Shown here one piece after another: positions 1 to 62,470 of a stretch of 64,000 bases of DNA (its first letter is position 1; every line of letters starts with the position of its first letter). Below the pieces are notes generated by a model. It was given only the letters and a program-made list of their open reading frames with translations. It made no database searches and had not been told where the DNA came from. The stretch is from Schmidtea nova (lineage: Eukaryota). Location: positions 284,146,001-284,210,000 of the forward strand of contig CM097883.1 in the NCBI GenBank assembly GCA_044892505.1, in the 5' to 3' direction. The position numbers were made by a program, and so were the translations under genes.

Positions 1-1000
1 ATAGACCGAACACTGAAATCAAGCACATATTTTCTATCGATGGCTCGCGAACCCTTAGAAATTACTCGAGTAATTATAATTCTGGTAGCAGCGCTCACCT
101 TTTGCGAGTATTTTCGCCCATTAGTTACAATACCAATGTTGCTTGCAATGGTTAACTGTTGTTTAAATCAATAATTATTGTGGTCACCATAAAATAAAAC
201 CCTGCTATGGTACCAACACCATAATAACATCCAATTTTTAGTATTAGGAAATATTAAAAACGAACAAACGACGTATTGTTTTTGATTTAGAAAGAAAAAT
301 ATATGTGAGTAATTAAGTCTAAAATGAATATAGGGTTGATTTAAATATTCATGATCAGAACCGGCTTTAGCTAGAAGTAGTGGATGCATAGCATTGGGCG
401 CCTCTTGTAAAGGACGCTTTAAAAACAGAATTTTAGTCTTGTTGGTTGTTATGACATGCGTCTAGATTTTAGTCTAATTTCAATTTAATATCAAGAAAAT
501 TAATCCGTCATTATTCTAGACAACGACGTTGGTGATGTGTACAACGGCATTTGTAATTAGAAGGCAGGTGATCCGTATTTCTACGACTACACCTTTCTAA
601 TTTACATCATTCGAGTTCACACATGCTGATAGAAGGCATTTAACTACTATTTAACTACCTCTGGGTGTTCGATCAGGAATCAACATTCTCCCGATCGTCA
701 TCAAGTCCTCTCTTGATAAATTTCCGTCGGCTCTGATTATTCAGAGTCCACTCACTCGACAAGATACCGACATGATGGCTTCTGTTTTAGACCGTGTCGA
801 TATGTTGTTCCTCAAACTTCGATATAAATACTAAACCGGCCTGAGAACTTTCCAGTTAGCGTAGCTTGATTTAAGTCGTCATTTCGGAAAGGTTATCCCT
901 TGGTTTCAGAGCCTGAGGTTCTACAATTGGGATCTCGCCCACGATGTTCCAGATTTTCTGCATAAGTTCGTGATCTACAATGTCTTTAGGTGATAACAAA
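1..1000 (-). pseudogene. Highly degenerate Ty3/gypsy pol remnant (RT-RNase H)
   Basis: Manual minus-strand translation gives broken motifs in the expected order: LQMPLYTSPTSLSRIMTD (cf. MPFG..NAP..F.R.M), WYHSRVL..NNY (cf. AYASRKL...NY), R*ALL/QNYNY (cf. RWAL.LQ.Y). Many stops and frameshifts. Confidence 0.4.
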
Positions 1001-2537: not shown

Positions 2538-3006
2538 TTGTACCTTTTTATAATTTATGTATTTTGGGATTTTTCAGATAATTTTGAGGTTGCACATAAT
2601 GAATCGTTACACATAGAGAATAGTTTTTGGTAATTGCGATAGTTTTTGAGGGTTTCGTATAGTGATAGGATTTTTGAGTGTTGAACGATAGGTTTTGAGG
2701 TTTGCGCATTTTTCAGCGATAATTTTAGAGCAATTTTACATCTCATGTAGCGATTTAATTTCAGAATTAAAATGTTAGCAAGGCGAACTTGATCAATAGA
2801 TTTTTTTTGCACAGCGATGCAACGACATAGCGGTGATTTTGAGTTTTGAATAGTTATACTTAGGAAAGGAGATTTTTGAGAGTTTTTATAAATCAATATA
2901 ATTTTAAGGTGCAGCGCATTATTTTTGGTTTTATATAGCGTAAGGAGTTTGTAGCTAAATCAAATCTCTATTGAAAAGACGTTTCGCTATTTTTTTAAGG
3001 AAGTTG

Positions 3007-3202
3007 AGCGTAAGACCTTCTAGCGGCAGCGGGAACCCGTGAAAATAAATGGTGAGTAGTTCCAGCGATCGAGCTCACATGCCCATCATTTTTCAACCAC
3101 CACGCGCAGTTCCAACCTAACTAGATAGGGAACAGTTAGGGGCGCGCGAGTGAGACAATTTGTTTTTATGTATGGTTATGGGTGAGGCATCCCTAGCATA
3201 CT
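3007..3202 (+). ncRNA. Candidate structured RNA, module A2 (GNRA hairpin plus possible pseudoknot); homologue at 46108-46302
   Basis: The two copies align over ~195 nt. Stem CCTAACT/AGTTAGG vs CTTGGTT/AATCAAG covaries; GCGA vs GCAA tetraloop; loop TAGGGA complementary to downstream TCCCTA in both. Confidence 0.55.
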
Positions 3203-3315
3203 TATTTATGATTATTTGGTTAATTATTTATTTATTTTTTTATTTATTTATTATTAACTATTTAAAACCCATCCATAAACCCAGTAATTAAGACAAAATT
3301 ATATGCATTGTATTG

Positions 3316-4630
3316 TTGGGCAAAAACTGAAAATTGTTTTAATAAAGCAATAACCCCATAAGTAGAGAGCGCGCAAGATTCAATTTAAACCCGAACATCC
3401 ATTAAGAATCCAAGCAATAAAGTGGAAAACACCAAAAAGGTGAAATGGACTCAAGCACATCAACCAGTAGAGAACGCGCTAGCTGTGAATTTGCAAGTCC
3501 TTACACTGAAATCTCGAGAAAAATAAAAAGTCGTCAAAATAGAACGTTTGAAAGTTAGAATAGGCGGAAAACCCATTGAAAATGCCTATAAAGAACAGAA
3601 TTGTGTTATAAAACTTCAGTGCAGAAAAAATTAACAAAATTTTAGAAGAAAATTGTGATTTTTTCATAAAATTTCACATTAAAGATAAAAAGAACTAATT
3701 TTGATCGAAATATAGCAAATTAAATCAAATTGAATAAATTTTGATACAAAAATAAAAATTTTGGATTAAAAATAAATTATTTATGGTTTATAAAAATTAT
3801 TACGTAAAAATATTGATTTAAATCGGCGGAAAATTATTAGAATTAATTTAGAAAAATTAAAAAGAACATTCTAGAACAATTTGTTTTACTGCATTAGTGA
3901 AGGTAACACACAAGCGATGGTATATATACCGCCATCAAAATGGCAATAGGCAGAATTTGTGTGAATTTTTCGTTAAAAATTTTAATTTTATTTTGAACAG
4001 AAGATTTTGCTGAAGATTTTATTTGAACTCGCGTCAGATAATTTTGAACAGAAGATTTTGCCGAAGATTTTATTTGGTGTCAGATAATTTGGAACCAGAA
4101 GTTTGCGGAAGAATTTGTCTGAAAATTTTCATCAAAAATTTAAATCTTAGTCTGAACCAGGAATTTCGGAAGAATTGATAGGATGTAAGTGTCATTTTCT
4201 TGTTCGGTGCGGTGTCATTGAACATCATGCCCCTTCAATTACCCCGTACCGGTAGTATTTTATTTTGTATATTATTGTTACTATTTTTATATTTTATTTA
4301 TTAAACAAAATATTGAATGAATATTATTTTTTTTTACTTGAATTTCGAAATGTCATAAATTCCCAGATTTAACCAAAATTTACTTTGAATAATATTTATT
4401 GTATAGAGATAAAAATAATAATTCTTTTTTCTTCCATACACCCTGAAACCTGTTTCTGGCCTTGTGCCAAGCGGGTGGAAGTAGCCTGAGCGGATCGCTG
4501 GTTCGATTCGTAATCGATCAGCCCATATTTCCGAGTACAGGTTATACGCCCAAACATCCATGATCACTTCATCCCAACTGGGGAACAGTGGCTTGGCCAA
4601 GGGCAAGGTGTTATATTAATGATCTATAAT
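3316..4630. repeat. Dispersed ~1.3 kb repeat, copy 1 (diverged inverted copy at 7972-9400)
   Basis: 3316-3960 aligns to the reverse complement of ~8770-9400 and 4330-4630 to the reverse complement of ~7972-8270; the middles differ. Confidence 0.8.
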
Positions 4631-4857
4631 TTATAATAGTGTATTTTATTGGAATTATAATTTTTTAACATAATGAGCACTTAAAACCTAATACTACATA
4701 AAAGCGTAAATGTCAATTCATCCAGCAATGTCTTTTCCATTATATAATAACTGTGCAAGAATATTCTACTCGTCATGCGCCTTCACTCTCACAACAATTA
4801 CCATCTTATCCGAAAAACTCAAGTAGAATAAAAAACTAATATTGAAAAGAGAATCGT

Positions 4858-5080
4858 GGTGGGTTGTTGACCGTCAATATGACCTTGACGTTTCTATGGC
4901 TCTCATCAACACATAAAACATTGAAATTACCACCTTGTTACCCGTCACTATGTAACGTTGGTACTGTAACAAGTGGGTGGGTATTCGCAATCAGTGAGCG
5001 TCGTCAATACGAAACTATGATTGACCGAATATCTCCTGGGTCCAAGGGCTACCGATGGAAGGTTTCTTGCCCATTTTTTG
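4858..5080 (-). ncRNA. Candidate structured RNA repeat, copy E (inverted copy at 10721-10950)
   Basis: ~225 nt homologous to the reverse complement of 10721-10950, with three compensatory stem changes. Confidence 0.55.
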
Positions 5081-9400: not shown

Positions 9401-10720
9401 ATCGTTTGAAATAATGCTTAAAGCTGAGATAATGATCACGAAATGAAACGTATTATGAAGACAAGTGTTGGTTGATCTGAATTAAACCTCAGTCATTATC
9501 TAAATAATTTTCTCTAGTGAACCTTGTTTTCGGGAGCCTGAAGTTCCTGCACAGCTAGGTTAGTTAGCATCATACATCCAGTAAAACTCACAAGCACTCA
9601 ATTATTTTCAGTCACCCATCATGAAATCAAACGCAAACACGACAACAATAAAATCATCCAAACCAATAACAATAGCACACCCAATCACCTAAAACCTTAA
9701 TAATAAAACATTCGTCTCACACTCACAATAGTACATATATACATATAAACACACCCGATATCCCATTCGGAATTCCATCATGTATACTCATCAAAAGTTT
9801 CCTAATCCCATTCTCAAATATTTTGCATCTAGTATTTTATCACCAGACCAAACTCTATGTGAAAAATTAAAAGTCCGAAAATCAATTGTACCAAACTCTG
9901 CATAAATCAAGAATCGTACTATTAACAATTAAGAGTTTTGTTAATGATATGATATCAATGATTAATAGAAAAGACTTAAATGTTACTTAATGCGTAATAG
10001 TAAAAACAAAAGAAAAACCAAGTTGCACATATTTTATTAAAGTAAAAAACATAACAGGATAAAAATCACCTTTCAGCTATTAAGTTTAAATGAACATTGT
10101 TTAATGGACAAATTGCTTCATCAGCCAAAAATAGGAAAAATTTGGTAAGAGTATATCTTTGTGATGTTCGGCTTGAAAACAAGAGGACACATTAAAATTT
10201 TCCACGATTTTTGAGTTTTTCGTCAATTTTCCACATTTGCTGAATTTGTATTGATTGATCCATTTTCGATCTTACTGAACTGTAAAACCGATAATCTAGC
10301 AGTCGAACGATATATTAACAAAATTATAATAAAAGTAAATTACCCTTAGGAAAGATATTTGATAGATTTTGCTCATGTAGAAGATTTTGACATCATTATT
10401 TAAAATATATTCTGTTTGAATATATTTATTAGCAAATTTAAACAATGAATTTGCTGTTTGCTAATTTTATAATAAAATTTGCCAAATGAAAATTTAAGTT
10501 CAAATTTTTAAATACAGGATTGAAAATTATTCTTAGAAAATGTTTTATTTATTATTTATCATAAATTGTAATATTGGCAAATTGAATGTTTTATTAGTGT
10601 TTCGAATGTTCGGAATAATTTATTGGGATGTAGTAATGAATTTATAGTTATGTAAAACTTCTATGTTGAATTACCGATAAAATTTTATTGAATACTTAAA
10701 GTTAAATCATGTGAGAAGTC

Positions 10721-10950
10721 ACAAAATGGGCATTTAACCTTCTACCGGTAGCCCTTGGACCCAGGAGATATTCGGTTAATCATAGTTTCGTATTGACGAC
10801 GCTCACTGATTACGAATACCCACCCATTTGTTGCATTACCAACGTTACATTGTGACGGGCAAGAAGATGGTTATTTCAATGTTTTGTATGTTGAGTTGTT
10901 GATGAGAGCCATAGCAACGTCAAGGTCATATTGACGATCAACAACCCACC
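10721..10950 (+). ncRNA. Candidate structured RNA repeat, copy F
   Basis: Homologous to 4858-5080 in the opposite orientation; same stems with compensatory changes. Confidence 0.55.
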
Positions 10951-11535
10951 AGTATGTTATAGTACAGAATAATGTTGTTTCAAATAAAATAACAAAATAT
11001 ATAAACAAAATAAAATATGTATTTCAGTTGATAATGAATTATTAATTTTTTAATGTTTTTATTACAAATTTAACACTACCAATTCAATTACGGTAAGTAC
11101 AATAAAACCATTAAAATAATACTCCTAGAAAATCAGCGTCAAATTAAGTTTCGCATTGGGACACTACTAATGATAGAACCAGCCCTGTTCATGATTATGG
11201 ATAATTTTAATATTATATTAAATTACAAAATTAAAGCCCACAAATTCAAAAGAATTTTAGAGAAGAATTAAAAAAATCTTCGTTTTTCTATAAAATATTT
11301 TTACTGAAATTCTATGCGATAATCATATAAAAACTTAAAAATAAGCTACATTCATAAATCTTTATTGTCGAAAATATTTTATTTTGCGACAAGAAATTTA
11401 GAAAATTCTTGTAATAATAGTAAAAATTACAAGATTTAAATTTAATCAGTAATAAAATTAATATTCCCAAAACTCAATAAGGAAAATCCATAATCATCAA
11501 ATAAAACATTTCATAAAATTTTTATTTAAAATATC

Positions 11536-15935: not shown

Positions 15936-18900
15936 ATCAATTTCGATGAACCAATTCACGTGGCCTGCGAAAATGGTCACGAAGAGGTTGCTAAGTTTCT
16001 CATTGACAAAGGCGCTAATATTGAATCACATAGAAAAGTGAAATTAATTCTTGAATTTTCTCGGAATGATTTTTTCTTTAGTTTGGTTGGCGGCCAATAT
16101 TTTTTGCTTGTTTTAATTGCCATATTGGCGTGATAGAGCTGTTGATTAAAAACGGATGCGACATAAATGTACATGATCAGGTTTATTTTGAAATAGGAAA
16201 AAGAGTTAATAACGCATTTTCCCCCAGAATAAATGGCAGCCGATCCATTGGGCGTGCCGGTATGGATATTTGGATATTGTGAAATTGTTCATCAAAAACC
16301 GATGCAACATTGAAGCATGTGGACATGTAGTGAATTTCAATTTATAAAATTGCATAATTAACTTGCTGAAACATATTTTATTGTTAATTATTAATTTTAT
16401 TAGGATAACCTTCGGCCGATACACATCAGTTGCCGATACGGATTTACTGATATTGTGAAATTGTTGATTGAGAGCAAATGCAACACTGAAGTCCGCGATT
16501 CTGTAATTTACGGTTAACTATAAAGTAATGTTAACAAAAAAAATTAAATCTAGAATAAATGGCGGCCATTACACTGGGCGTGCTATAATGGCAATATTGA
16601 GGTGATTGAGTTACTTATATTAAGGAAGTGCACTTTGGACATGCTAAGTAAAGTAAAATTATTATTNNNNNNNNNNNNNNNNNNNNNNNNNNNNNNNNNN
16701 NNNNNNNNNNNNNNNNNNNNNNNNNNNNNNNNNNNNNNNNNNNNNNNNNNNNNNNNNNNNNNNNNNNNNNNNNNNNNNNNNNNNNNNNNNNNNNNNNNNN
16801 NNNNNNNNNNNNNNNNNNNNNNNNNNNNNNNNNNNNNNNNNNNNNNNNNNNNNNNNNNNNNNNNNNNNNNNNNNNNNNNNNNNNNNNNNNNNNNNNNNNN
16901 NNNNNNNNNNNNNNNNNNNNNNNNNNNNNNNNNNNNNNNNNNNNNNNNNNNNNNNNNNNNNNNNNNNNNNNNNNNNNNNNNNNNNNNNNNNNNNNNNNNN
17001 NNNNNNNNNNNNNNNNNNNNNNNNNNNNNNNNNNNNNNNNNNNNNNNNNNNAATTATTTTNNNNNNNNNNNNNNNNNNNNNNNNNNNNNNNNNNNNNNNN
17101 NNNNNNNNNNNNNNNNNNNNNNNNNNNNNNNNNNNNNNNNNNNNNNNNNNNNNNNNNNNNNNNNNNNNNNNNNNNNNNNNNNNNNNNNNNNNNNNNNNNN
17201 NNNNNNNACCTTTGATCTTTTTTTATTATTATTATCAATAATTCTCATAATGACTATAGATCAAATTTTTTTTTATAAACAAGTACACAATATTTCGGCA
17301 CAGCCTTTATCAAGTGTGTATTTCTATCGTTATATTTACTTAATCCTAAATAGTAGCCTTAATTATTTTTTTAATATTTTATAATGATTTTATTGGATGA
17401 AAAAATTTATTTTATTTTAATTTTTTTTGTGCGAATTGAATGTTGATGGACGGTTTGTATTTTTTTATGAAAAAAGTCTCGGAAGCTAATCTTTGTAATG
17501 AATTTTTGAATCCCTCTTGTAGAATCTGGCATTTTGTTTCTTCTATAGTTGGAGTTGTTTTATGTACTTTCTCCCAGTGTTCGTAATAATTACTGGTTTT
17601 GATTTTAGTATGTTCATTAAGTCGGGTGCGAAAAGTTCTATGTGTTTCTCCTATGTAAGTAGCGTCACATTTTTGACAAGAAAGTTTATATACTATATTT
17701 TTGGAAAAGCAAAAGCATCGGGTTGTGGAACGACAAAGACATTTATGTTTGGAGATGTTGGAAATTGGTGGCTTTCGGAGTTGTGATTTTAACGGTGCGG
17801 AGGTTATGAACGTTGGACGGATGTGGATAGGCAAATCTGTTTGATTAAAAATGTTGGTGATTTTGTTGGCTGTAGTGTCATTTAGGAAAGGTAATCTTAG
17901 ATATGTTGTGTGTTTGTTATTGTTATTGTGTTTCTGGCGTTTTCTATTGTTGCGTTTATTGTGGTATGGTTCGTTAAGGAAGTGTTTCTTTACAAAGTCT
18001 TCAGGGTATCCATTTTGGAGGAATCGTATTTTGAAGTTTTCTAATGTTTCTTGTATTTTGTTTGCGTCTGAACAGTTTCTTATGGCTCTTTTTCTTTCTC
18101 CTATTAGTAATGCGATTTTGCGTTGAAGTGGAACCTGGCTTTTCCATGGGAGGATATGACCGCTATGTAAACCTTTAGAATATAGCTCGGTGTTTGCATT
18201 TAGTGTATCTTGGCCTTTTGTGAAACTTACCATGGTATCTAAAAACGATATTTTACCTTCTGTGTTCGGTGTTTCAAAAGTAAATTGTATGTTGGTGTTA
18301 GTAGAATTTGCGTGTGATAGGATTTGATTGAGAGGGATTGTGGAGACTATGAAGATGTCGTCGATGTATCGTTTCCAGAAAAGTATTTTGTCCCCAAAAA
18401 AAGATATGATCTTAGATTCTATAAAGTTCATGTAGAAGATGGCTAAGATGGGAGAAAGGTTATTACCCATGGCTAATCCATGAATTTGTTTGAATGGTTT
18501 TTCTTTAATTATGACAGTATCTGAATTTATTGCTAATTTTAGAAGTTCTATAAAGTCTTGTTTAGTTAAGTCTGCGAGGTCAGTATTGGCTTTATGAGTT
18601 TCAAAGAAAGAAGCTGCGATATCGAAAATGTTATTCTCTCCGTGAAGAGGAATAGATCCGTAAAGATTGGAAACGTCAAGAGATCCCCAGAAGTACTGTT
18701 GTCCTGAGTTTAACGGAAGAGACGTATTTGTAATTTCGGAGACGAATTCAGTTGTGTTTTTAAGATGAGAAGGAACCAAAGGCAAAAGTGTTTTTAGAAT
18801 TTCTGAAAGAACTTTAGAAAGTGTTGTGGAAGGAGTGTCAACTGCAGATACAAGAGGTCTACCTTTTAAAGGACTTTTGTGATCTTTAGGTAACATAGTC

Positions 18901-20867
18901 ATATTACTAGGTAAAGGCTCACTGCAGTTGCATTTTAAAAGTAAATCTTTGATTTGAAGGTTAATTTGTTTATTTGCAAGTGTTGAAAGTTTCTTATTGT
19001 ATAAAATCTGAGTCGATGCAGGTAAGATTATTTTGTTTATCGGTTCATAGTTCGAGAGATGTTCTTCAAATAGAGTATTGTATTGTTCTGTGTCAAGAGC
19101 AATTAGTCGATTTGTTTTATCTGATGGAAGAATTGTGAAGTCTTTGGAATTCTTAATTTTCTTTATGTTTGAAGTGAAAGAATTTTGTGTTGAGCAATGT
19201 TTTTCAAGAAAGATAATTTGTTCTCTGACTAAAGTTTTGACTTTAGTTTCTAAACAGCTGAGTTTTTCTTCAAGTTCAGTCGAAAAGAGAGGCATATTTG
19301 GATATGTTCTACGATTTGGATCCAGAAGATGATTGTGCTTTTCAGCTAAACTTGAAGATTTGGTGGATGAAATTGGTTTTAGATGGTATCCTATTTGTCT
19401 TCTTAGGCTTACAACTCCGAAAGCCACCAATTTCCAACATCTCCAAACATAAATGTCTTTGTCGTTCCACAACCCGATGCTTTTGCTTTTCCAAAAATAT
19501 AGTATATAAACTTTCTTGTCAAAAATGTGACGCTACTTACATAGGAGAAACACATAGAACTTTTCGCACCCGACTTAATGAACATACTAAAATCAAAACC
19601 AGTAATTATTACGAACACTGGGAAAAAGTACATAAAACAACTCCATCTATAGAAGAAACAAAATGCCAGATCCTACAAGAGGGATTCAAAAATTCATTAC
19701 AAAGATTAGCTTCCGAGACTTTTTTCATAAAAAAATACAAACCGTCCATCAACATTCAATTCGCACAAAAAAAATTAAAATAAAATAAATTTTTTCATCC
19801 AATAAAATCATTATAAAATATTAAAAAAATAATTAAGGCTACTATTTAGGATTAAGTAAATATAACGATAGAAATACACACTTGATAAAGGCTGTGCCGA
19901 AATATTGTGTTATTGTTTATAAAAAAAAATTTTGATCTATAGTCNNNNNNNNNNNNNNNNNNNNNNNNNNNNNNNNNNNNNNNNNNNNNNNNNNNNNNNN
20001 NNNNNNNNNNNNNNNNNNNNNNNNNNNNNNNNNNNNNNNNNNNNNNNNNNNNNNNNNNNNNNNNNNNNNNNNNNNNNNNNNNNNNNNNNNNNNNNNNNNN
20101 NNNNNNNNNNNNNNNNNNNNNNNNNNNNNNNNNNNNNNNNNNNNNNNNNNNNNNNNNNNNNNNNNNNNNNNNNNNNNNNNNNNNNNNNNNNNNNNNNNNN
20201 NNNNNNNNNNNNNNNNNNNNNNNNNNNNNNNNNNNNNNNNNNNNNNNNNNNNNNNNNNNNNNNNNNNNNNNNNNNNNNNNNNNNNNNNNNNNNNNNNNNN
20301 NNNNNNNNNNNNNNNACTATAGATCAAATTTATTTTTATAAACAATAACACAATATTTCGGCACAGCCTTTATCAAGTGTGTATTTCTATCGTTATATTT
20401 ACTTAATCCTAAATAGTAGCCTTAATTATTATTATTATTATTTTTTTTTTTAAAAAAAAAAATAAATAATAATAATTAAGGCTACTATTTAGGATTAAGT
20501 AAATATAACGATAGAAATACACACTTGATAAAGGCTGTGCCGAAATATTGTGTTATTGTTTATAAAAATAAATTTGATCTATAGTCATTATGAGAATTAT
20601 TGATAATAATAAAAAAAGATCNNNNNNNNNNNNNNNNNNNNNNNNNNNNNNNNNNNNNNNNNNNNNNNNNNNNNNNNNNNNNNNNNNNNNNNNNNNNNNN
20701 NNNNNNNNNNNNNNNNNNNNNNNNNNNNNNNNNNNNNNNNNNNNNNNNNNNNNNNNNNNNNNNNNNNNNNNNNNNNNNNNNNNNNNNNNNNNNNNATAAA
20801 TATTGCAGAAAAGTACGGACATGTCAATGTTATGAAACTTGTTCAAAATGAATTGAAAAGTCAACTG
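15936..20867 (+). CDS. Ankyrin-repeat gene (one repeat per ~99-nt exon); Penelope element lies in an intron
   Basis: Exons: INFDEPIHVACENGHEEVAKFLIDKGANIESHRK; FGWRPIFFACFNCHIGVIELLIKNGCDINVHDQ; NKWQPIHWACRYGYLDIVKLFIKNRCNIEACGH; DNLRPIHISCRYGFTDIVKLLIESKCNTEVRDS; NKWRPLHWACYNGNIEVIELLILRKCTLDMLSK (ends 16652); later exon NIAEKYGHVNVMKLVQNELKSQL (~20797-20867). Phase-0 GT-AG introns of ~50 nt. Confidence 0.85.
17281..17322 (-). ncRNA. Minimal type I hammerhead-like ribozyme in the Penelope 3' UTR
   Basis: ACAC-TTGATAA-A-GGC TGT GCC-GAAA-TAT-T-GTGT: stem I ACAC/GTGT, U3:A8 core variant, 3-bp stem II, palindromic ATAT stem III. Confidence 0.65.
17412..19410 (-). CDS. Penelope RT-GIY-YIG polyprotein (open frame; residues of the track ORF from 19411-19472 derive from the inverted arm)
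   Basis: GRPLVS, SLDVSNLYGSIP, QIHGLAMGNNLSPILA, WKRYIDDIF, ISFLD; endonuclease IVYKLSCQKCDATYIGETHRTFRTRLNEH. Confidence 0.95.
19873..19914 (+). ncRNA. Hammerhead-like motif, copy in the inverted pseudo-LTR
   Basis: AATACACAC TTGATAA AGGCTGTGCC GAAA TATT GTGTTATT; stem I 8 bp with one bulge. Confidence 0.65.
20344..20385 (-). ncRNA. Hammerhead-like motif, left arm of palindrome
   Basis: Reverse complement of the 19873-19914 motif. Confidence 0.6.
20516..20557 (+). ncRNA. Hammerhead-like motif, right arm of palindrome
   Basis: Identical to 19873-19914. Confidence 0.6.
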
Positions 20868-29825: not shown

Positions 29826-30794
29826 TTATTTAATCCTAAAACGTTTGCCGCCAATTGTTACTGTATTTTGACTCTTGATCTTTTTTGTTTGTTTTACTTT
29901 CGTATCACTATTGTTGGCGCTTGCACTGCCTAAAGGCACTTTGCACAATTTTGCCCATTGGTTGAGCAGTCTTATAGCAATTGTTTTATTTTCCGACGTT
30001 TCATCTGGATGCTTACAAAGGTGATAAACCGCTTCATAGATATTGCTATCCTTAATATCGACCGATGAAATAATATTGAACTCTAGGAGACCTTGCAACA
30101 AAATCGTCCTTATATCTATTGCGGGCAGCCGGTTACCTTTCAATGGTTTTAACCATCCGGCCATTGCTGATAGAAATTCGCATTCAATTAATAAGCTTTT
30201 CACGTTTTTCTCACTAGATTTCCTAAGCATATCTTCTACTTGTTGCAAAACTTCTAGTTGTTCCTCGCATGGCTCGGTTTTTAAATTTAATTTTTCGTCA
30301 GTTTCACGTGCTAATTGCATTTTGTTTATCAATTGAAAAATTGGGATTTTTTTCCGGTCTTTGTCAATAATTTTGTTTGCGTCCGAGTGGATTCTTTTTT
30401 TGGATTTTTTTGCTATTTTATTTCTGACATTCTCAAAGGCGGTTAAAATATTATTGTTTTTATTGTCGTTATCGGGACCGGATTTTGTTGTTTTATTTCG
30501 ATTGGGTTTCAATATTACTTTGGCATTGTTTTCATTTTGCTTTATTGATGATTTTCTAGCAATTGTTTTAATTGGGGATTTTTTTATACTTTCTAAACTG
30601 CTTTCCTCGTCAGAATCACCAAAAAGGTCTTTGCAAATCTGCCGCGATGAATCGTTTTTGGAGCTGGAATTTGTCGGTTTTGATGGCAAGTTTACAGTGA
30701 AATCAATTTCATAATCAGAATCAGAATCACCTAGCAAGTCTTTGACTAGTTTCTTGGAAGCTTTTTTATTGTTTAAATTGTTTGTTGTTTTCAT
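29826..30794 (-). CDS. IWS1: IWS1/Spn1-like elongation factor (TFIIS N-terminal-like domain), intronless, copy 1
   Basis: 322 aa open; FLSAMAGWLKPLKGNRLPAIDIRTILLQGL...IKDSNIYEAVYHLCKHPDETSENKTIAIRLLNQW resembles the IWS1 domain (LS.M.EWL.PLPD.SLP...IR..LL...SGIG.AV..L.KHP.E...NK..A.KL..EW). Confidence 0.8.
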   Translation of the reverse strand: MKTTNNLNNKKASKKLVKDLLGDSDSDYEIDFTVNLPSKPTNSSSKNDSSRQICKDLFGDSDEESSLESIKKSPIKTIARKSSIKQNENNAKVILKPNRNKTTKSGPDNDNKNNNILTAFENVRNKIAKKSKKRIHSDANKIIDKDRKKIPIFQLINKMQLARETDEKLNLKTEPCEEQLEVLQQVEDMLRKSSEKNVKSLLIECEFLSAMAGWLKPLKGNRLPAIDIRTILLQGLLEFNIISSVDIKDSNIYEAVYHLCKHPDETSENKTIAIRLLNQWAKLCKVPLGSASANNSDTKVKQTKKIKSQNTVTIGGKRFRIK

Positions 30795-32300: not shown

Positions 32301-33176
32301 ATAAGGCACACACACATAGTACTATTATTTTTATAAATAAACCGTGTTGGTGTGTTGTTGCTTAAATTTACAAAAATTTCTATCGCTTCGCTCCTGGATC
32401 TTACTGCTCTAGGGTCACAACACACACATAAAAAGCTTACTGCCCAGGCACCCGTAAATACCCTATTTATTTAAGTTGGTACTGTGCCTGACAGGCGAAT
32501 GCGAACCAACAGGTGAACTCCTTTACAAGAACTACTCTTGATTCGACAATCTCTCGGGTTCCTTAAGACAGATAGAAGGTCATGCTTTATTCCCGTTCTC
32601 ACCCTTGCGCAGGTCTCTCATTTCGGGTGTTATCTCTTAAACGTACGTTGAAATTCTCTCTCCTTTGTTCGTCGGAACAATAAATTCAATTTCACTTTTA
32701 AGTCTGATAAAAATAAAATTAAGTTAAAACAAAAAACGGGTAGATTGATTAAATACATATAATTAATGACTATTACAAATAAAACAGATTTTAGATTAGT
32801 TTTTAAATATTTCCGTCAGTTACCTCGCTGAGATCGGTCAAAAGTCTGGTTTTCTCTTTCTCTAGTCGCTGCTTCGTTCGCCTTCGACGCTGAGTATGAG
32901 TACGTCTCCGCTTTTTCGTCGGTTTGATCATATCCTCTTAAAATATCCACTTAAAATTTCACTAAAATCTTAAATTTTCTTCATCTTTGATTTGCTATTT
33001 ACGATTATTTCCATTAATGTTAAAACTGAAATTTTATGTCATAAATTTATAATCACAAATTATAATCAAAGTTGCGATAACTTAGAAACCTTTTATTTTT
33101 TTAAAAATCATATTTATTAGTTATTTTGTTTAGAAATATATTTTAAAATTAACATTTTAGAACAATTTATTTTAAT

Positions 33177-33178
33177 AC

Positions 33179-33243
<65 letters not shown>

Positions 33244-33368
33244 ATCAATAATTCTCATAATGACTATAGATCAAATTTTGTTTATAAAAAAAATTTGATC
33301 TATAGTCATTATGAGAATTATTGATAATAATAATAAAAAAAGATCAAAGGTGAAAAAAGATAATTATG

Positions 33369-33430
<62 letters not shown>
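33177..33430. repeat. (TA)n microsatellite containing a 92-bp fold-back of the Penelope 3' terminus
   Basis: 40-bp perfect arms 33239-33278 / 33291-33330 matching the terminal sequence at 17209-17270 and 20570-20601; (TA)n on both sides. Confidence 0.88.
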
Positions 33431-33435
<5 letters not shown>

Positions 33436-33766
33436 AAATAGAAATATTAGAAAATAAATGTATATTTATTTAACAAAGATTAAGAAGCACTGATATCAAA
33501 AAATCATGTTCAATTAAAAAAATAATTTATTTATTAAATACATATTTCGTAAAAACAAACCCCAATCCAAAATTATATTCTGCTCAAGTATTTCGAGAAA
33601 TTACTTCTCATCATCAAGTGCTATTCAGTCAACCATTCCAATATAAATCAAATAAATCAAGTTGAAAACAAATTATTCATAATTTAAAAAAATGTAATAC
33701 AAAATTCCAAAATAATCAAAATTTTTGAAACGATAAAATTATTTTTCAATTTAAATAAATTAATCT

Positions 33767-40846: not shown

Positions 40847-40920
40847 AAGAGTTTGATGTTGACAAAATTTTCGTTTTCTCTTTGTTTTTCGTTTCCTTTT
40901 ATTTAATTAATAATAACTAA

Positions 40921-41651
40921 TGTTTCAGCCAAAGTTTGCCTGAGCAAACTTTGGCTATTTTTGTGTGTGTATGTTAAAAATGTCTTATAGGCCTGTGTGC
41001 GCATTTTTACCGCTTGGTGTTCATAATTTATGTTGTTCACGCGTCTGTGTGCGCGATTAATTGGTAATTTTTGGATTATTGAGAATTAGATAGGTAATTG
41101 ATTTTTAGATTTAATATTTTAGAATTTTAGGGTTTTCTGTGAATTATTTTGTGTTGTTTAAATACTCCAATTGAGTATTTTAGATTTTGGATTTTTCAGT
41201 TTCGAATTAGAATTTTGATTAATGTGGAATTTCGATTATGTTGGAATCAATTTGGAATTTTTGTAATTATGGTTTCGAAAATGGAATTCTCCTCGTGTAA
41301 TGTTCAGAATTGATGCTCAATGCTTAATGTCAGAAGATTTACCATGCTTCGTAGCACAAAGCAGTTCTCATACTACTGTACGAAGAGATAATTTGCTAGA
41401 TGATACCATTAGCCAGTCGCAGCGTTATGGTCTCTTCGATTATGGTCTCTTTGAAATGTATCCTGAATCAAGACTCTGCTGGTTTAACAAAATGATATTT
41501 GATGACGATTTAACCCAGTTTACTGTGATCGGTAGATTGTTTGGTCTGGCAATTTACAATAACTTTATGATTGATCCTCAATCTCCTCTTGTAATGTTCA
41601 AAACATTGGCCAATAAAATCATTGAAAGGGCGTTACGTTTTATCACAAACA
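40921..41651 (+). repeat. 5' LTR (731 bp) containing a HECT fragment and AATAAA at 41612
   Basis: Direct repeat of 45303-46033; starts TGTTTCAG, ends ACAAACA. Confidence 0.95.
41300..41610 (+). pseudogene. HECT E3 ligase (HERC3/4-like) N-lobe fragment inside the LTR
   Basis: VRRDNLLDD, YGLFEMYPESRLCWFN, FTVIGRLFGLAIYNNFMIDPQSPLVMFKTL vs HERC-type VRR..IV.D, YGMF.Y..DSRLIWF, F.LIG..CGLAIYN...VD..FPLALYKKL; internal deletion, no catalytic C-lobe. Confidence 0.8.
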
Positions 41652-42004: not shown

Positions 42005-46033
<4,029 letters not shown>

Positions 46034-46107: not shown

Positions 46108-46302
46108 AGCGTAAGTCCTTATACGGCAGCATGAACCCGTGAACATAAATGAGGAGTAGTTCTAGCAATAGAGCTCACCTGCCCATTATTGTTCAATCAC
46201 CTTGCACATCACCAACTTGGTTATATAGGGAAATAATCAAGGGCGCTCGAGTGAGAAAAGAAATATTTATACATGATCATGGATGGGTAATCCCTAGCTA
46301 CT
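46108..46302 (+). ncRNA. Candidate structured RNA, module B2 (homologue of 3007-3202)
   Basis: AGTTCTA-GCAA-TAGAGCT hairpin; CTTGGTT/AATCAAG stem with TAGGGA loop; 3' TCCCTA. Confidence 0.55.
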
Positions 46303-46344
46303 ATTAGAAATTTTTGATCTAAACCCTCCATGAACCCCACACAC

Positions 46345-46530
46345 GTAAAAAGGATCGACTCGGAGATATTCCAAAAAATCAAAAATGCTCAGATTTCAAT
46401 AATTTTTATACCAATCTAGTGAGAATTATACGGCGAATAAAAAGGGTCAAAAAGTCGAAACATGAAAATTTTGTCTCATCTGACCAAATTTTACATGTAA
46501 AAAAAGTAGATTCGGGAAATTTCCAAAATT
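46345..46530 (+). repeat. Diverged dispersed copy of the 152-bp satellite monomer
   Basis: ACGTAAAA..GATCGACTCGG..ATTCCAAAAAATCAAAAATGCTCAGATTTCAATAATTTTTATACCAATCTA matches the 55.8-56.6 kb monomer. Confidence 0.8.
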
Positions 46531-47113
46531 TTGTAAATGGTCAGAATTCAATAATAGAACCTTTGGTATCAGAACCCTAGTATCAAAACCTTGGTATGAA
46601 AAGAGTGAATTAATGAAAGAACTAGTTATTGAATGATTGATTTCATCAAGAAAGTTGATTATTTTCACTGATTAAATTAGTCTGCGTGTGAATATATTGG
46701 AGATATTTGATTGGTTAATTCTTATAAAACTGAGTGAATTGAAAAGTTTCTTAACATTGTGATAATATTTTATATCATTGAATTCAAAGTGAAAGAATTC
46801 TAAATTGAAAATGACTAAAAGTAATATTTTATTGATTAAATCGATAAAATTGATTTGAAAATATTAAATGGAACATCAAAATTCAATTTAAATGTCATTG
46901 AAAACTTATTCATAAAGAGGAGTAATACGATGAAGTGAGTTAATGTGAAAGAATGCTTATCTTGAAGGATTCAATTATTTAATTCTTTAAAGATAAAAAT
47001 CTGTTCATAAACGAGAAATTTACTAAGAAACTGATTCAACAAAGAGGATTAATTCTTTAAAGAAAGTTCAATCAAATACAAATAAGTAGTCTGTTTAAAT
47101 TTGTGAATCATCA

Positions 47114-55690: not shown

Positions 55691-55789
55691 TTTGGTCGGG
55701 GAAAATTAAAAAGTGGTCAGAATCAAAAAATTTTTATATCAATCTACTGAGAATTGAAAGACAAAAAATAATGGCCAAAAATTTAAAAA

Positions 55790-56580
55790 AATGAAAAATT
55801 GATTTTTTCCGACCCAATTTTTACACGTAAAAATGGTCAACTCGGGGAAATTCCAAAAATCAAAAATGCTCAGAATTCAATAATTTTTATACCATTCTAC
55901 TGAGAATCGAATGGCGAACAAAAAGGTTCAAAAAGTAAAAACATGAAAATTTGACTTTTCCGACTCAATTTTTACACGTAAAAATGGTCAACTCGGGGAA
56001 ATTCGAAAAATAAAAAATGCTCAGAATTCAATAATTTTTATACCATTCTACTGAGAATCGAATGGCGAACAAAAAAGGTTCAAAAAGTAAAAACATGAAA
56101 ATTTGACTTTTCCGACTCAATTTTTACACGTAAAAATGGTCAACTCGGGGAAATTCGAAAAATCAAAAATGCTCAGAATTCAATAATTTTTATACCATTC
56201 TACTGAGAATCGAATGGCGAACAAAAAAGGTTCAAAAAGTAAAAACATGAAAATTTGACTTTTCCGACTCAATTTTTACACGTAAAAATGGTCAACTCGG
56301 GGAAATTCCAAAAATCAAAAATGCTCAGAATCAAATAATTTTTATACCAATCTACTGAGAATTGAATGGGGAACAAAAAAGGGTCAAAAAGTAAAAACAT
56401 GAAAATTTTGACTTTTCCGACTCAATTTTTACATGTAAAAATGATCGACTCGGGGAAATTCCAAAAATTAAAATGTTGTCAGAATTCAATAATTTTTATA
56501 CCAATCTACTGAGAATTGAAAGGCAAACAATAATGGTCAAAAAATTAAAATCATGAAAAAATCAAAATTTAATACGTAAA
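55790..56580. repeat. Satellite B: ~152-bp monomer, 5 copies (4 copies at ~59830-60470)
   Basis: ACGTAAAA anchor at 55825, 55976, 56128, 56280, 56433; second array 59867, 60019, 60171, 60324. Confidence 0.92.
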
Positions 56581-57607: not shown

Positions 57608-58579
57608 TTATTTTATCTTAAAACGTTTGCCACCAATTGTTACTGTATTTTGATTTTTGCTCTTTTTTGTCTGTTTTACCCTAGGACTATCACTATTGTT
57701 GGCGCTTGCACTGCCTAAAGGCACTTTGCACAATTTTGCCCATTGGTTGAGCAGTCTTATAGCAATTGTTTTATTTTCCGACGTTTCATCTGGATGCTTA
57801 CAAAGGTGATAAACCGCTTCATATATATTGCTATCCTTAATGTCGACCGATGAAATAATATTGAATTCTAGGAGACCTTGCAACAAAATCGTCCTTATAT
57901 CTATTGCGGGCAGCCGGTTACCTTTCAATGGTTTTAACCATCCGGCCATTGCTGATAGAAATTCGCATTCAATTAATAAGCTTTTCACGTTTTTCTCACT
58001 AGATTTCCTAAGCATATCTTCTACTTGTTGCAAAACTTCTAGTTGTTCCTCGCAAGGCTCGGTTTTTAAATTTAATTTTTCGTCAGTTTCGCGCGCTGAT
58101 TGCATTTTGTTTATCAACTGAAAAATTGGGATTTTTTTCCGGTCTTTGTCAATATTTTTGTTTGCGTCCGATTGGATTCTTTTTTTCGATTTTTTTGCTA
58201 TTTTATTTCTGACATTCTCAAAGGCGGTTAAAATATTTTTGTTTTCATTGTCATTATCGGGACCGGATTTTGTTGTTTTATTTCGATTGGGTTTTAATAT
58301 TACTTTGGCATTGTTTTCATTTTGCTTTATTGATGATTTTCTAGCAACTGTTTTAATTGGGGATTTTTTTATACTTTCTAAACTGCTTTCCTCGTCAGAA
58401 TCACCAAAAAGGTCTTTGCAAATCTGCCGTGATGAATCGTTTTTGGAGCTGGAATTTGTCAGTTTTGATGGCAAGTTTACAGTGAAATCAATTTCATAAT
58501 CAGAATCAGAATCACCTAGCAAGTCTTTGACTAGTTTCTTGGAAGCTTTTTTATTGTTTAAATTGTTTGTTGTTTTCAT
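57608..58579 (-). CDS. IWS1: IWS1-like protein, intronless, copy 2 (323 aa)
   Basis: Same domain as copy 1; open frame. Confidence 0.8.
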   Translation of the reverse strand: MKTTNNLNNKKASKKLVKDLLGDSDSDYEIDFTVNLPSKLTNSSSKNDSSRQICKDLFGDSDEESSLESIKKSPIKTVARKSSIKQNENNAKVILKPNRNKTTKSGPDNDNENKNILTAFENVRNKIAKKSKKRIQSDANKNIDKDRKKIPIFQLINKMQSARETDEKLNLKTEPCEEQLEVLQQVEDMLRKSSEKNVKSLLIECEFLSAMAGWLKPLKGNRLPAIDIRTILLQGLLEFNIISSVDIKDSNIYEAVYHLCKHPDETSENKTIAIRLLNQWAKLCKVPLGSASANNSDSPRVKQTKKSKNQNTVTIGGKRFKIK

Positions 58580-61498
58580 TTTTATTATTTTATTATTGAA
58601 ACTTTTAAATAGAAATGAAATATATATTTATATAATTTAATTAAATTTTGATTGGTCAAAATAATAATTTTAATTAATTTAAAATGTTTAAAATCTAAAA
58701 TGATATCAAATAATAATATCAATTATTGGTAATCACATTATTCTTATTTATTTTTACGTATAATTATGGCTGACATCTTGGTTCAAACATATTCCATTTT
58801 TTTCGTTTCAAGGTTTGTTAGTAAATACTAAAAAACAATTTCTAGAAGAAAATTAATTTTTTATTAATTTATTAATTTTTATTAATTTATATTAATTATT
58901 AATTTTAATTTATTTATTTTAATTTATTTTTATTAATTTTTGTAAAGGATTTTTACTCTGGTTATTTTGTATATGATTTTCTACTCCGTGATTTTCTAGG
59001 GCAAAAAGGGACTCTGGGTTTTTTGTACATGAAATTTTTGATCTGGATTTTTGAATACATTATTTTGATCTGGTTATTTTTGTAAAGGAATTTTACTCTG
59101 GTTATTTTGAATAGGATTTTCAACTCCGAGATTTTCTCGGGCAAAAAGGGACTCTGGGTTTTTTGTACATGGAATTTTTATACATGAATTTTTGGTCTGG
59201 TATTTTTTGTATAGGATTTTTAGTCCTATTATTTTGAATAAGATTTTCAACTCCCATATTTTTCTCAGGCAAAAAGGGATTCTGATAATTTTGAACTGAA
59301 AATTTAATGGTAAATAAAAAACACGTGTAAATTTTTTAAACAAGTAAATTATCATTAAAGTATTTTGTATAGGATTTTCTACTCCGAGATTTTTCTCGGG
59401 CAAAAATAGACTCTGATAATTTTGAACTGAAATTTTAATGGTTAATAAAAAACACGTGTAAATTTTTTAAACAAGTAAATTATCATTAAAGTATTTTGAA
59501 TAGGATTTTCTACTCCGAGATTTTTATCGGTCAAAAAGGGACTCTGGGTTTTTTGTACATGAATTTTTGATCTAGATTTTTGAATACAATATTTTGATCT
59601 GATATTTTGTAGTGTTTTTACTCTGGTTATTTTGTATAGGATTTTCAACTCCCAGATATTTTCTAGGGCAAAAAGGGACTCTGGTAATTTTGAATATGAT
59701 TTTTGATCTTGATTTTGATTTTGAAATAATATTTTGGTCGGGGAAAATTAAAAAGTGGTCAGAATCAAAAAATTTTTATATCAATCTACTGAGAATTGAA
59801 AGACAAAAAATAATGGCCAAAAATTTAAAAAAATGAAAAATTGATTTTTTCCGACCCAATTTTTACACGTAAAAATGGTCAACTCGGGGAAATTCCAAAA
59901 ATCAAAAATGCTCAGAATTCAATAATTTTTATACCATTCTACTGAGAATCGAATGGCGAACAAAAAAGGTTCAAAAAGTAAAAACATGAAAATTTGACTT
60001 TTCCGACTCAATTTTTACACGTAAAAATGGTCAACTCGGGGAAATTCGAAAAATCAAAAATGCTCAGAATTCAATAATTTTTATACCATTCTACTGAGAA
60101 TCGAATGGCGAACAAAAAAGGTTCAAAAAGTAAAAACATGAAAATTTGACTTTTCCGACTCAATTTTTACACGTAAAAATGGTCAACTCGGGGAAATTCC
60201 AAAAATCAAAAATGCTCAGAATCAAATAATTTTTATACCAATCTACTGAGAATTGAATGGGGAACAAAAAAGGGTCAAAAAGTAAAAACATGAAAATTTT
60301 GACTTTTCCGACTCAATTTTTACATGTAAAAATGATCGACTCGGGGAAATTCCAAAAATTAAAATGTTGTCAGAATTCAATAATTTTTATACCAATCTAC
60401 TGAGAATTGAAAGGCAAACAATAATGGTCAAAAAATTAAAATCATGAAAAAATCAAAATTTTATACGTAAAAATACAGTCTCAGTAAAAAAGGGTAAAAT
60501 ACATAAAAACGTGGAAATATTTAAAATAAAAATTTTTAAACTAAATAATTAAATCTAAATAAATTTATGATAATTAAATAAAAAAGTAAATAAATTCTAT
60601 ACGAATTTCAAAACTCTATAAATAATTCACTCATTATTTTGTATTGAATTTATCAAGTAAAATGATACATTAAATAAAAGCATGGAAATAATAAGTAAAT
60701 TAAACTTAGAATTCAAATTCAAGAAAATTTATTTTAATTACAAAACCTTAAAAGAAAAAAAAATTTGTATTTGAAAAAGTTATTAGTTTTTAGTAAATTC
60801 TTTAATTTTTTTTATTTTTTATTGTTTGGATTCCGGCGCAAAATATAGAATTTTAGAGTTTCATTGATAAAAAAAGTTTGGTAAAAAAATTGTAACAATT
60901 GCTCATAAAAAAAGTCAAAATATTTAAACACATCAACAATACCACCTAAAAATGGATAAAGCATTTTTTCAAAGAAGTGCTTAAAATGATTCACAAGTTT
61001 TAATTTAGGGCTCGTAAAATTAAATCTTACCAGATCTTACAGAATTTTCATTAAAAAAATTTTAATAAGAAAATTTTTCATTAGAAAATTTTTAATTAGA
61101 AAAATTTATAAAAAATTATTTATTATATCGTCATTGTGTAGAAATAAGTTTTGAAACAAATTTTAGATATTATGAATGTTAATTTTAAAATTTTATTTGT
61201 TTTAATATTAAAATATTAATATTAATAATATTAAATTTTAATATTAAAATATTAAAACAGTTAAATAATAATTTTATTTTATTAATAATAATTTTATTAT
61301 TTAATAATAATTTATTAAAGAGAAAATTATTTAATTATATACGACATTTAATATTAAAATTAATATTAAAATATTAATATATTGAAACAGTTAAATAATA
61401 ATTTTATTTTATTAATAATAATTTTATTATTTAATAATAATTTATTAAAGAGAAAATTATTTAATTATATATGACATTTAATATTTCACTGATATTAT

Positions 61499-62470
61499 TT
61501 ATTTTATCTTAAAACGTTTGCCACCAATTGTTACTGTATTTTGATTTTTGCTCTTTTTTGTCTGTTTTACCCTAGGACTATCACTATTGTTGGCGCTTGC
61601 ACTGCCTAAAGGCACTTTGCACAATTTTGCCCATTGGTTGAGCAGTCTTATAGCAATTGTTTTATTTTCCGACGTTTCATCTGGATGCTTACAAAGGTGA
61701 TAAACCGCTTCATATATATTGCTATCCTTAATGTCGACCGATGAAATAATATTGAATTCTAGGAGACCTTGCAACAAAATCGTCCTTATATCTATTGCGG
61801 GCAGCCGGTTACCTTTCAATGGTTTTAACCATCCGGCCATTGCTGATAGAAATTCGCATTCAATTAATAAGCTTTTCACGTTTTTCTCACTAGATTTCCT
61901 AAGCATATCTTCTACTTGTTGCAAAACTTCTAGTTGTTCCTCGCAAGGCTCGGTTTTTAAATTTAATTTTTCGTCAGTTTCGCGCGCTGATTGCATTTTG
62001 TTTATCAACTGAAAAATTGGGATTTTTTTCCGGTCTTTGTCAATATTTTTGTTTGCGTCCGATTGGATTCTTTTTTTCGATTTTTTTGCTATTTTATTTC
62101 TGACATTCTCAAAGGCGGTTAAAATATTTTTGTTTTCATTGTCATTATCGGGACCGGATTTTGTTGTTTTATTTCGATTGGGTTTTAATATTACTTTGGC
62201 ATTGTTTTCATTTTGCTTTATTGATGATTTTCTAGCAACTGTTTTAATTGGGGATTTTTTTATACTTTCTAAACTGCTTTCCTCGTCAGAATCACCAAAA
62301 AGGTCTTTGCAAATCTGCCGTGATGAATCGTTTTTGGAGCTGGAATTTGTCAGTTTTGATGGCAAGTTTACAGTGAAATCAATTTCATAATCAGAATCAG
62401 AATCACCTAGCAAGTCTTTGACTAGTTTCTTGGAAGCTTTTTTATTGTTTAAATTGTTTGTTGTTTTCAT
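61499..62470 (-). CDS. IWS1: IWS1-like protein, intronless, copy 3 (323 aa, same protein as copy 2)
   Basis: Track translation identical to copy 2. Confidence 0.8.
   Translation of the reverse strand: MKTTNNLNNKKASKKLVKDLLGDSDSDYEIDFTVNLPSKLTNSSSKNDSSRQICKDLFGDSDEESSLESIKKSPIKTVARKSSIKQNENNAKVILKPNRNKTTKSGPDNDNENKNILTAFENVRNKIAKKSKKRIQSDANKNIDKDRKKIPIFQLINKMQSARETDEKLNLKTEPCEEQLEVLQQVEDMLRKSSEKNVKSLLIECEFLSAMAGWLKPLKGNRLPAIDIRTILLQGLLEFNIISSVDIKDSNIYEAVYHLCKHPDETSENKTIAIRLLNQWAKLCKVPLGSASANNSDSPRVKQTKKSKNQNTVTIGGKRFKIK

Follow-up and report, generated by a model that had tools for sequence, protein, structure and literature searches.

An abundant dispersed repeat, probably a SINE-like retroposon, keeps a covarying two-domain RNA fold

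Introduction

The described systems closest to the repeat reported here are the stringent-type LINE/SINE pairs, which were reportedly treated by Kajikawa and Okada in 2002. Other short structured repeats, such as Sm-alpha of schistosomes and the animal retrozymes, bear hammerheads and are found in animal genomes together with Penelope-like elements. According to section 4.3 of PMC3747384, the 3' stem-loops of stringent-type LINEs and SINEs undergo compensatory changes in the stem, with conserved letters in the loop and its flanks. In the part of PMC11194090 used here, R2-type non-LTR elements are described as having a structured 3' UTR, to which their own protein binds in target-primed reverse transcription.

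We analysed a 64-kb stretch of an AT-rich animal genome, hereafter the window, in which a sequence-only reading had singled out positions 3007-3202 of the plus strand as a candidate pseudoknotted RNA with covariation and GNRA loops. This segment is copy A of a repeat, and the position of its 3' edge can be given to within about 20 nt (3196-3220). Like the eel UnaL2/UnaSINE1 and monocot L1/SINE pairs, as they appear in the part of PMC3747384 that treats them, the copy-A family is a short dispersed repeat that combines a variable, compensated stem with conserved loop and flanks, carries this hairpin in its 3' part and has a body that is apparently common to other elements. It differs from the pairs, as presented in the same part, by a fold of about 150 nt with two domains and a possible loop-3' pairing, in place of a single hairpin of about 50 nt, and by the absence of a simple-repeat or poly(A) tail; moreover, covariance-model searches found no partner LINE sharing its 3' part within the window. 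With the R2-type 3' UTR, as far as this part of PMC11194090 describes it, the family would share a multi-helix 3' RNA acting as a specific template handle. Unlike R2 in the same account, however, the unit is non-coding, far shorter and dispersed rather than site-specific, and the two have no sequence similarity.

Results

The repeat family in the window

All coordinates and letters given by the sequence-only reading for copy A and for its counterpart, copy B, agreed with the sequence. These direct repeats share 76% identity over 196-197 nt, and their flanks are unrelated. We performed a profile search of the window using nhmmer, which revealed two diverged copies, C and D, and the four copies were aligned with MAFFT without structural input. 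A covariance model built from A-D and run unfiltered on the window revealed three distant relatives, E, F and G. The family in the window thus comprises seven members, four close and three distant, located on both strands.

3007..3202, plus strand: copy A
46108..46302, plus strand: copy B, second subfamily, 76% identical to A
32405..32588, minus strand: copy C, diverged, nhmmer E 3e-12
464..645, minus strand: copy D, diverged, 3' part different, nhmmer E 2e-5
4889..5071, minus strand: distant relative E, covariance-model E 4e-5, same two-domain layout, 3-nt hairpin-2 loop, 3' CCATAG
10729..10919, plus strand: distant relative F, covariance-model E 2e-4, 89% identical to E
22..197, plus strand: distant relative G, covariance-model E 0.008

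All seven members begin at the same place, and each is surrounded by unrelated flanking DNA. The copies within the window differ by 24-40%, fall into subfamilies and sit among other repeats. Two identical 733-bp LTRs are found near copy B, but the copy is located 75 bp beyond them and does not belong to the LTR element. A second covariance model, built from all seven members, found no additional member in the window.

One further region, 4396-4550 on the minus strand, gave a model E of 0.88 and was not accepted as a member of the family. Its head, GGCGTATAACCTGTACTCGG, resembles the heads of E and F, and a close match to the Pol III B-box consensus, GGTTCGATTCG, is present on the other strand at 4500-4510. 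This region may represent another short retroposon family.

The regions around E and F (4857-5080, minus strand, and 10720-10951, plus strand) extend about 35 nt past the shared CCATAG. The extension contains a hammerhead-like UGAUGAG...GAAAC with a 5-7 bp stem, followed by GUC; helix II is missing from it, and the Rfam hammerheads do not match it.

Genomic abundance and edges

The abundance of the family was examined in contigs from four public runs of a single study and a single organism, with a library type that is not on record, compared at 80% likeness. These contigs contain hundreds of variants, and in each run 39-79 distinct contigs cover single positions. At position 3007 each run has 21-47 loose ends, upstream of which no common sequence is found, and the 5' edge is sharp; pieces stop at 3196-3201. 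The unit is short (about 190-215 bp), non-coding, high-copy and dispersed, with discrete ends, as is a SINE. Stem letters of the copy-B type are absent among the copy-A-like contigs, and A and B therefore represent two subfamilies. Many contigs match 3040-3196 only and continue upstream into 80-250 nt of unlike sequence, which suggests that the body 3040-3196 is common to another element; a diverged head could look identical.

The 30 nt that precede the 5' end (2977-3006 in copy A) are A-rich in other genomic copies, with a consensus ...AAAAAAAATAAT and an agreement of about 0.48, which points to a target preference or to a variable A-rich leader. Among family variants between 2800 and 3400, C>T changes (4-7 places per run) outnumber G>A (1-2), and A>G changes (6-8) outnumber T>C (2-4). 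This asymmetry would fit a filter acting at the RNA level on the plus strand, or a mutation bias of RNA or cDNA. A different repeat, which starts at about 3312 (seen in 3304-3400, with an inverted copy at 9402-8745), has a summed contig depth about fourfold that of the copy-A family.

Fold of the plus-strand RNA

The plus-strand RNA is predicted to comprise a 5' head followed by two hairpin domains. The features of copy A are as follows.

3007..3040, plus strand: 5' head of 34 nt, conserved in sequence (CCTTCTATCGG, also given as CCUUCUAUCGG, and GAACCC); no supported helix, no pair placed here by RNAalifold
3041..3093, plus strand: domain 1, a long irregular hairpin of about 21 pairs (RNAalifold), 13 of 21 pairs changed on both sides (helices 1-3)
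3058..3075, plus strand: tip of domain 1, a 7-bp stem (3058-3064/3069-3075) with a GNRA loop (3065-3068, GCGA)
3098..3152, plus strand: domain 2, a lower helix (3098-3106/3143-3152), an internal loop and an apical hairpin (per-copy folds, duplexes)
3107..3115, plus strand: conserved asymmetric internal loop of domain 2, CAGTTCCAA, facing GG at 3141-3142
3116..3140, plus strand: hairpin 2, stem 3116-3122/3134-3140, loop AGATAGGGAAC; helix 4, 96% of cells paired, 4 of 8 pairs changed on both sides
3190..3195, plus strand: TCCCTA, candidate partner of the loop TAGGGA (3126-3131), 6-7 nt of complementarity in A-D

A stem reading GCGG/CCGT in copy A and ACGG/CCGT in copy B had been proposed within the head (3023-3026/3037-3040). 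Its letters are present, but it would count four base pairs, with a central mismatch in C and D, and we regard it as a weak, unsupported candidate.

The tip of domain 1 corresponds to an upstream hairpin of the sequence-only reading, AGTTCCA-GCGA-TCGAGCT (3058-3075) in copy A and AGTTCTA-GCAA-TAGAGCT in copy B. In copy A this stem has one C-C mismatch, 3063/3070, that was absent from the earlier description. The two GNRA loops are as described, and the close copies C and D add GUAA and GAAA, such that the tip loop of A-D always reads G-N-R-A while N and R vary. The corresponding loops of E, F and G are not GNRA (AUUG, AUUG and GUAG, respectively). The wobble pair U3060.G3073 is present in all seven members.

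The stem of hairpin 2 reads CCTAACT/AGTTAGG in copy A and CTTGGTT/AATCAAG in copy B (46216-46222/46235-46241). All seven pairs are retained between the two copies: three have undergone double transitions and a fourth has changed from A-U to G-U. Although half of the letters in the stem differ, which is twice the mean divergence, zero pairs are lost. One in 3,000 column shuffles of the A/B alignment yields a 7-bp hairpin that is retained in both copies with three compensated pairs, and the covariation claimed for this stem thus holds. Across the four close copies, pair 2 is C-G, U-A, G-C or, once, a mismatch, pair 4 is A-U, G-C or C-G, and pair 6 is C-G, U-A or A-U; copies C and D contribute double changes of the transversion type (RNAalifold on the MAFFT alignment). 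Hairpin 2 keeps its stem by compensatory change with conserved letters in the loop and flanks: the loop AUAGGG is kept in A-C, and the flanking ACCAAC and GG are nearly invariant.

The lower helix of domain 2 occupies the same register with unrelated letters, namely CGCG/CGCG in A, UCAGGCA/UGCCUGG in C, CUUGUUA/UAACAAG in E and UAGUUA/UAACUG in G. When domain 2 is folded alone for each copy, this helix closes directly outside hairpin 2 and the internal loop, whose pattern is CAnnACCAA opposite GG. A duplex-shuffle test that ignores the register gave P values of about 0.03-0.05. For three unrelated lineages to have six to seven pairs in a row at one fixed register would be much less likely than these values suggest. 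Domain 2 is followed by a U-rich tract, single-stranded in most copies, and then by a conserved CC[C/A]UAG near the end of the unit.

The majority form of the family differs from copy A at six places. In domain 1 it shows a compensated change, G3053-C3079 in place of the U-A of copy A. Its G at 3070 repairs the sole tip-stem mismatch of copy A, and its T at 3133 repairs the 3123/3133 mismatch, resulting in an eighth pair in hairpin 2. The frequent polymorphisms located in stems (3103 C>T, 3120 A>G and 3145 C>T) each retain a wobble pair, and the remaining frequent ones (3095, 3097, 3158 and 3164) fall in unpaired stretches. This pattern is as expected from selection on a few source copies, with inserted copies decaying.

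Covariation and strand

In the seven-member alignment, which was fitted to the covariance model and is therefore biased towards structure, 87.6% of cells pair, and sliding the partners by 1-3 columns lowers this to 36-48%; 17 of 29 pairs are changed on both sides as compared to 4-7 in the slid controls, and none of 500 shuffles reaches any observed measure. The MAFFT-only alignment of the four close copies, folded by RNAalifold, gives the same two hairpins. None of 1,000 column shuffles of the four copies yields any compensated pair in a 7-bp hairpin paired to 90% or more, whereas the real alignment gives two hairpins with three such pairs each. Since this alignment is blind to structure, these results show that the covariation signal is independent of the model-fitted alignment. 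The structured RNA with covariation and GNRA tetraloops put forward by the sequence-only reading is thus supported, and the seven-member alignment, with its shuffle and slide controls, extends it. The folding energy of the whole element was no better than that of shuffles on either strand (z 0.2-0.7); the signal therefore resides in covariation and not in stability.

G.U cells outnumber A.C cells by 24 to 11 in the seven members; for the close copies A-D alone, the counts are 14 and 3. The tetraloops read GNRA on the plus strand only. Together with the invariant U.G pair, these features argue for an RNA product of the plus strand, rather than a DNA cruciform or a template-switch artefact.

Complementarity between the hairpin-2 loop and the 3' end

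The loop of hairpin 2 had been proposed to form a pseudoknot with a 3' segment. In all of A-D, a 6-7 nt complement of this loop is located 38-50 nt downstream of the stem. The P values obtained by shuffling are given per copy, and those of A and B are not independent: 0.03 for TAGGGA (3126-3131) and TCCCTA (3190-3195) of copy A, 0.06 for TAGGGA (46226-46231) and TCCCTA (46291-46296) of copy B, 0.02 for TAGGGT and ACCCTA of copy C, and 0.013 for GTCTAGA and TCTAGAC of copy D. The site in copy C is possibly shifted, as an alternative alignment matches TCCCTAG of B to ATCCAGG of C. The complementarity is thus present in the four close copies, but changed letters add little to it. The hairpin-2 loops of E, F and G, with 2-3 nt, cannot form this pairing, yet these members retain CCAUAG. 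A loop-3' pairing within the A-D branch is plausible, with no more than moderate support.

Comparison with known RNA classes

We compared the whole window with Rfam 15 at the gathering score, and no family matched. In searches of three sub-regions at E up to 10, the best scores were 9-17 bits, against thresholds of 31-112 bits, and all belonged to unrelated families. At this same E value no match to tRNA, 7SL or 5S RNA was found in Rfam, and ARAGORN found no tRNA. Inspection by eye recognised no Pol III A or B box in the unit, and a B box on the minus strand was rejected as it would be at the wrong end. Runs of T4-T5 are found within most copies (3166-3170 in A); Pol III would terminate at them and fail to reach the 3' pseudoknot partner. 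No poly(A) tail is seen at the 3' ends of the copies; copy A is followed by (ATTT)n-like DNA, and B and C share TAGAAATTTTTG after the unit. A search for target-site duplications gave nothing beyond a low-complexity 10-mer. The family therefore resembles SINEs derived from tRNA, 7SL or 5S RNA in its size, copy number, discrete 5' end and subfamilies with source-gene evolution, and differs from them in having no such similarity, no recognised A or B box and internal T runs.

Several other layouts were considered and rejected. An H/ACA snoRNA should have ACA three nt before its end. The unit does not, the majority form reading ACG at 3155-3157, and hairpin 2 has no pocket and is followed by about 55 nt; an H-box-like (ANANNA-like) ACAGUA or ACAUCA is present between the hairpins in five of the seven members. 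A spliced-leader RNA would call for a GU donor, which C and D do not have. A hammerhead in A-D was dismissed by eye, having no core, and a solo LTR on account of missing TG..CA ends and paired copies. Finally, a pattern scan of metagenomes gave one chance match, an unrelated GC-rich brine contig, and a search of full-text literature for four conserved motifs gave chance primer matches only, two 11-mers never occurring.

Other features of the window

The 733-bp direct repeats at 40919-41651 and 45301-46033 are 100% identical and are the LTRs of a very recent LTR-element insertion. The interior contains an Hsp70-ubiquitin-DUF1759 (Gag-like) ORF. A tandem repeat of about 152 bp (46341-46555, 55702-56559 and 59744-60450) forms two arrays, and a piece of 1.4 units is found directly after copy B. 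At 33165-33439, 275 bp match their own reverse complement at 75%, with short 94-99% matches to the Penelope-like element ends at 17208-17282 and 20556-20621. A nearby reverse transcriptase ORF is Penelope-like and of animal type, as defined by comparison with a protein atlas. Three ORFs of 322-323 aa, all on the minus strand (57608-58579, 61499-62470 and 29826-30794), encode a TFIIS/Med26-type helical domain and have a single relative, 58% identical, in a word search.

Discussion

The copy-A family is probably a SINE-like non-autonomous retroposon that preserves its RNA fold for recognition by a partner element's reverse transcriptase. Although the covariation is genuine, its carrier is most likely a transposon and not a unique cellular RNA or a ribozyme. 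The sequence-only reading had offered a ribozyme, an IRES-like element or a replication signal as possible functions. The last of these, taken as a signal for retrotransposition, comes close to the reading that we favour. The first two find no support: Rfam yielded no match at E values as high as 10, a catalytic core motif is missing, and the sequence downstream offers no coding context. The same reading had held that a match to a transposable-element family would speak against its proposal. The segment does belong to a very abundant dispersed repeat with seven members in the window; this changes the presumed purpose of the RNA and does not remove its structure.

If the family is such a retroposon, only source copies that keep the fold would be copied through an RNA intermediate. 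Subfamilies would then differ by compensatory changes, while single genomic copies would decay randomly. The fold, chiefly the 3' end together with domain 2 and the invariant loops in it, would provide a handle for the reverse transcriptase of a partner autonomous element. Domain 2 is the probable binding site, through the invariant ACCAA/GG internal loop and the apical loop. Such 'stringent' 3' recognition would set the 3' end for target-primed reverse transcription, which would begin at the 3' CCCUAG region; the candidate pseudoknot may contribute to this step. The A-rich sequence upstream of the 5' end runs against this reading, and the proposed mechanism does not account for it. Also weighing against it are the internal T runs, the lack of a recognised A or B box and of a tRNA, 7SL or 5S origin, the missing poly(A) tail and target-site duplications, and the absence of a partner LINE from the window.

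The 190-nt unit could alternatively be a module of a longer autonomous element (a LINE, a Penelope-like or an LTR element), such as its leader or the end of its 3' UTR, scattered as truncated or recombined pieces, with the fold serving the element's own reverse transcription or packaging. We consider this unlikely. The many contigs that match 3040-3196 only, with unlike sequence upstream, would be accommodated by such a module, and both Penelope-like and LTR elements are present in the window. However, the seven copies share their start point, the DNA on either side of them is unrelated, between 21 and 47 contigs in each run break precisely at 3007, and the covariance model matches nothing in or beside the reverse transcriptase-bearing elements of the window.

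It is more doubtful that the family derives from host genes for a small non-coding RNA, such as a lineage-specific Pol III or snRNA-like transcript with a cellular role, accompanied by many retro-pseudogenes. Divergence of 24-40%, the presence of subfamilies, a location among repeats on both strands and the very high abundance all speak against a host gene family, as do the lack of an Rfam match and the failure of the H/ACA and spliced-leader layouts; the discrete 5' end, the two-domain fold with its strong covariation and the U-rich single-stranded tract after domain 2 in most copies are what such a family would also display.

Similarly doubtful is a bolder proposal, in which the family would represent an undescribed superfamily of structured retroposon RNAs, with a two-domain fold and a 3' pseudoknot in one branch, that act beyond a passive handle, for instance as a mimic of a cellular RNA, recruiting host factors, or as a catalytic or conformational switch at the 3' end, or that have a functional host RNA at their root.

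A self-cleaving ribozyme or retrozyme-like unit is very improbable. As with Sm-alpha and the retrozymes, we are dealing with short structured repeats in an animal genome with Penelope-like elements, some of them nearby, and the 3' extension of E and F carries the hammerhead-like UGAUGAG...GAAAC...GUC. In contrast to those repeats, copies A-D have no hammerhead core, being devoid of CUGAUGA and GAAA, the units are not in tandem, the E/F motif has no helix II, and neither Rfam hammerheads nor any other family matched, even at E up to 10.

Hairpins selected or generated at the DNA level (a MITE or Helitron end, or template-switch mutation) or by chance are hardly credible, for although hairpin arms are inverted repeats and the three double changes between A and B are all transitions, chance is ruled out by the shuffle and slide controls, strand specificity is seen in the invariant U.G, the remaining G.U pairs and the GNRA loops, C and D show transversion-type double changes, and there are no terminal inverted repeats.

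As a SINE-like retroposon with a recognition fold, the family is a further case of a known kind of thing, a structured retroposon RNA. It calls for caution in annotation, since covariation and GNRA loops here mark repeat families and not unique regulatory RNAs. It also offers a clean natural example of an RNA structure kept by selection on the source copies of a transposon. If the partner reverse transcriptase is found, the subfamilies would provide natural compensatory mutants for studies of template choice by non-LTR or Penelope-like elements.
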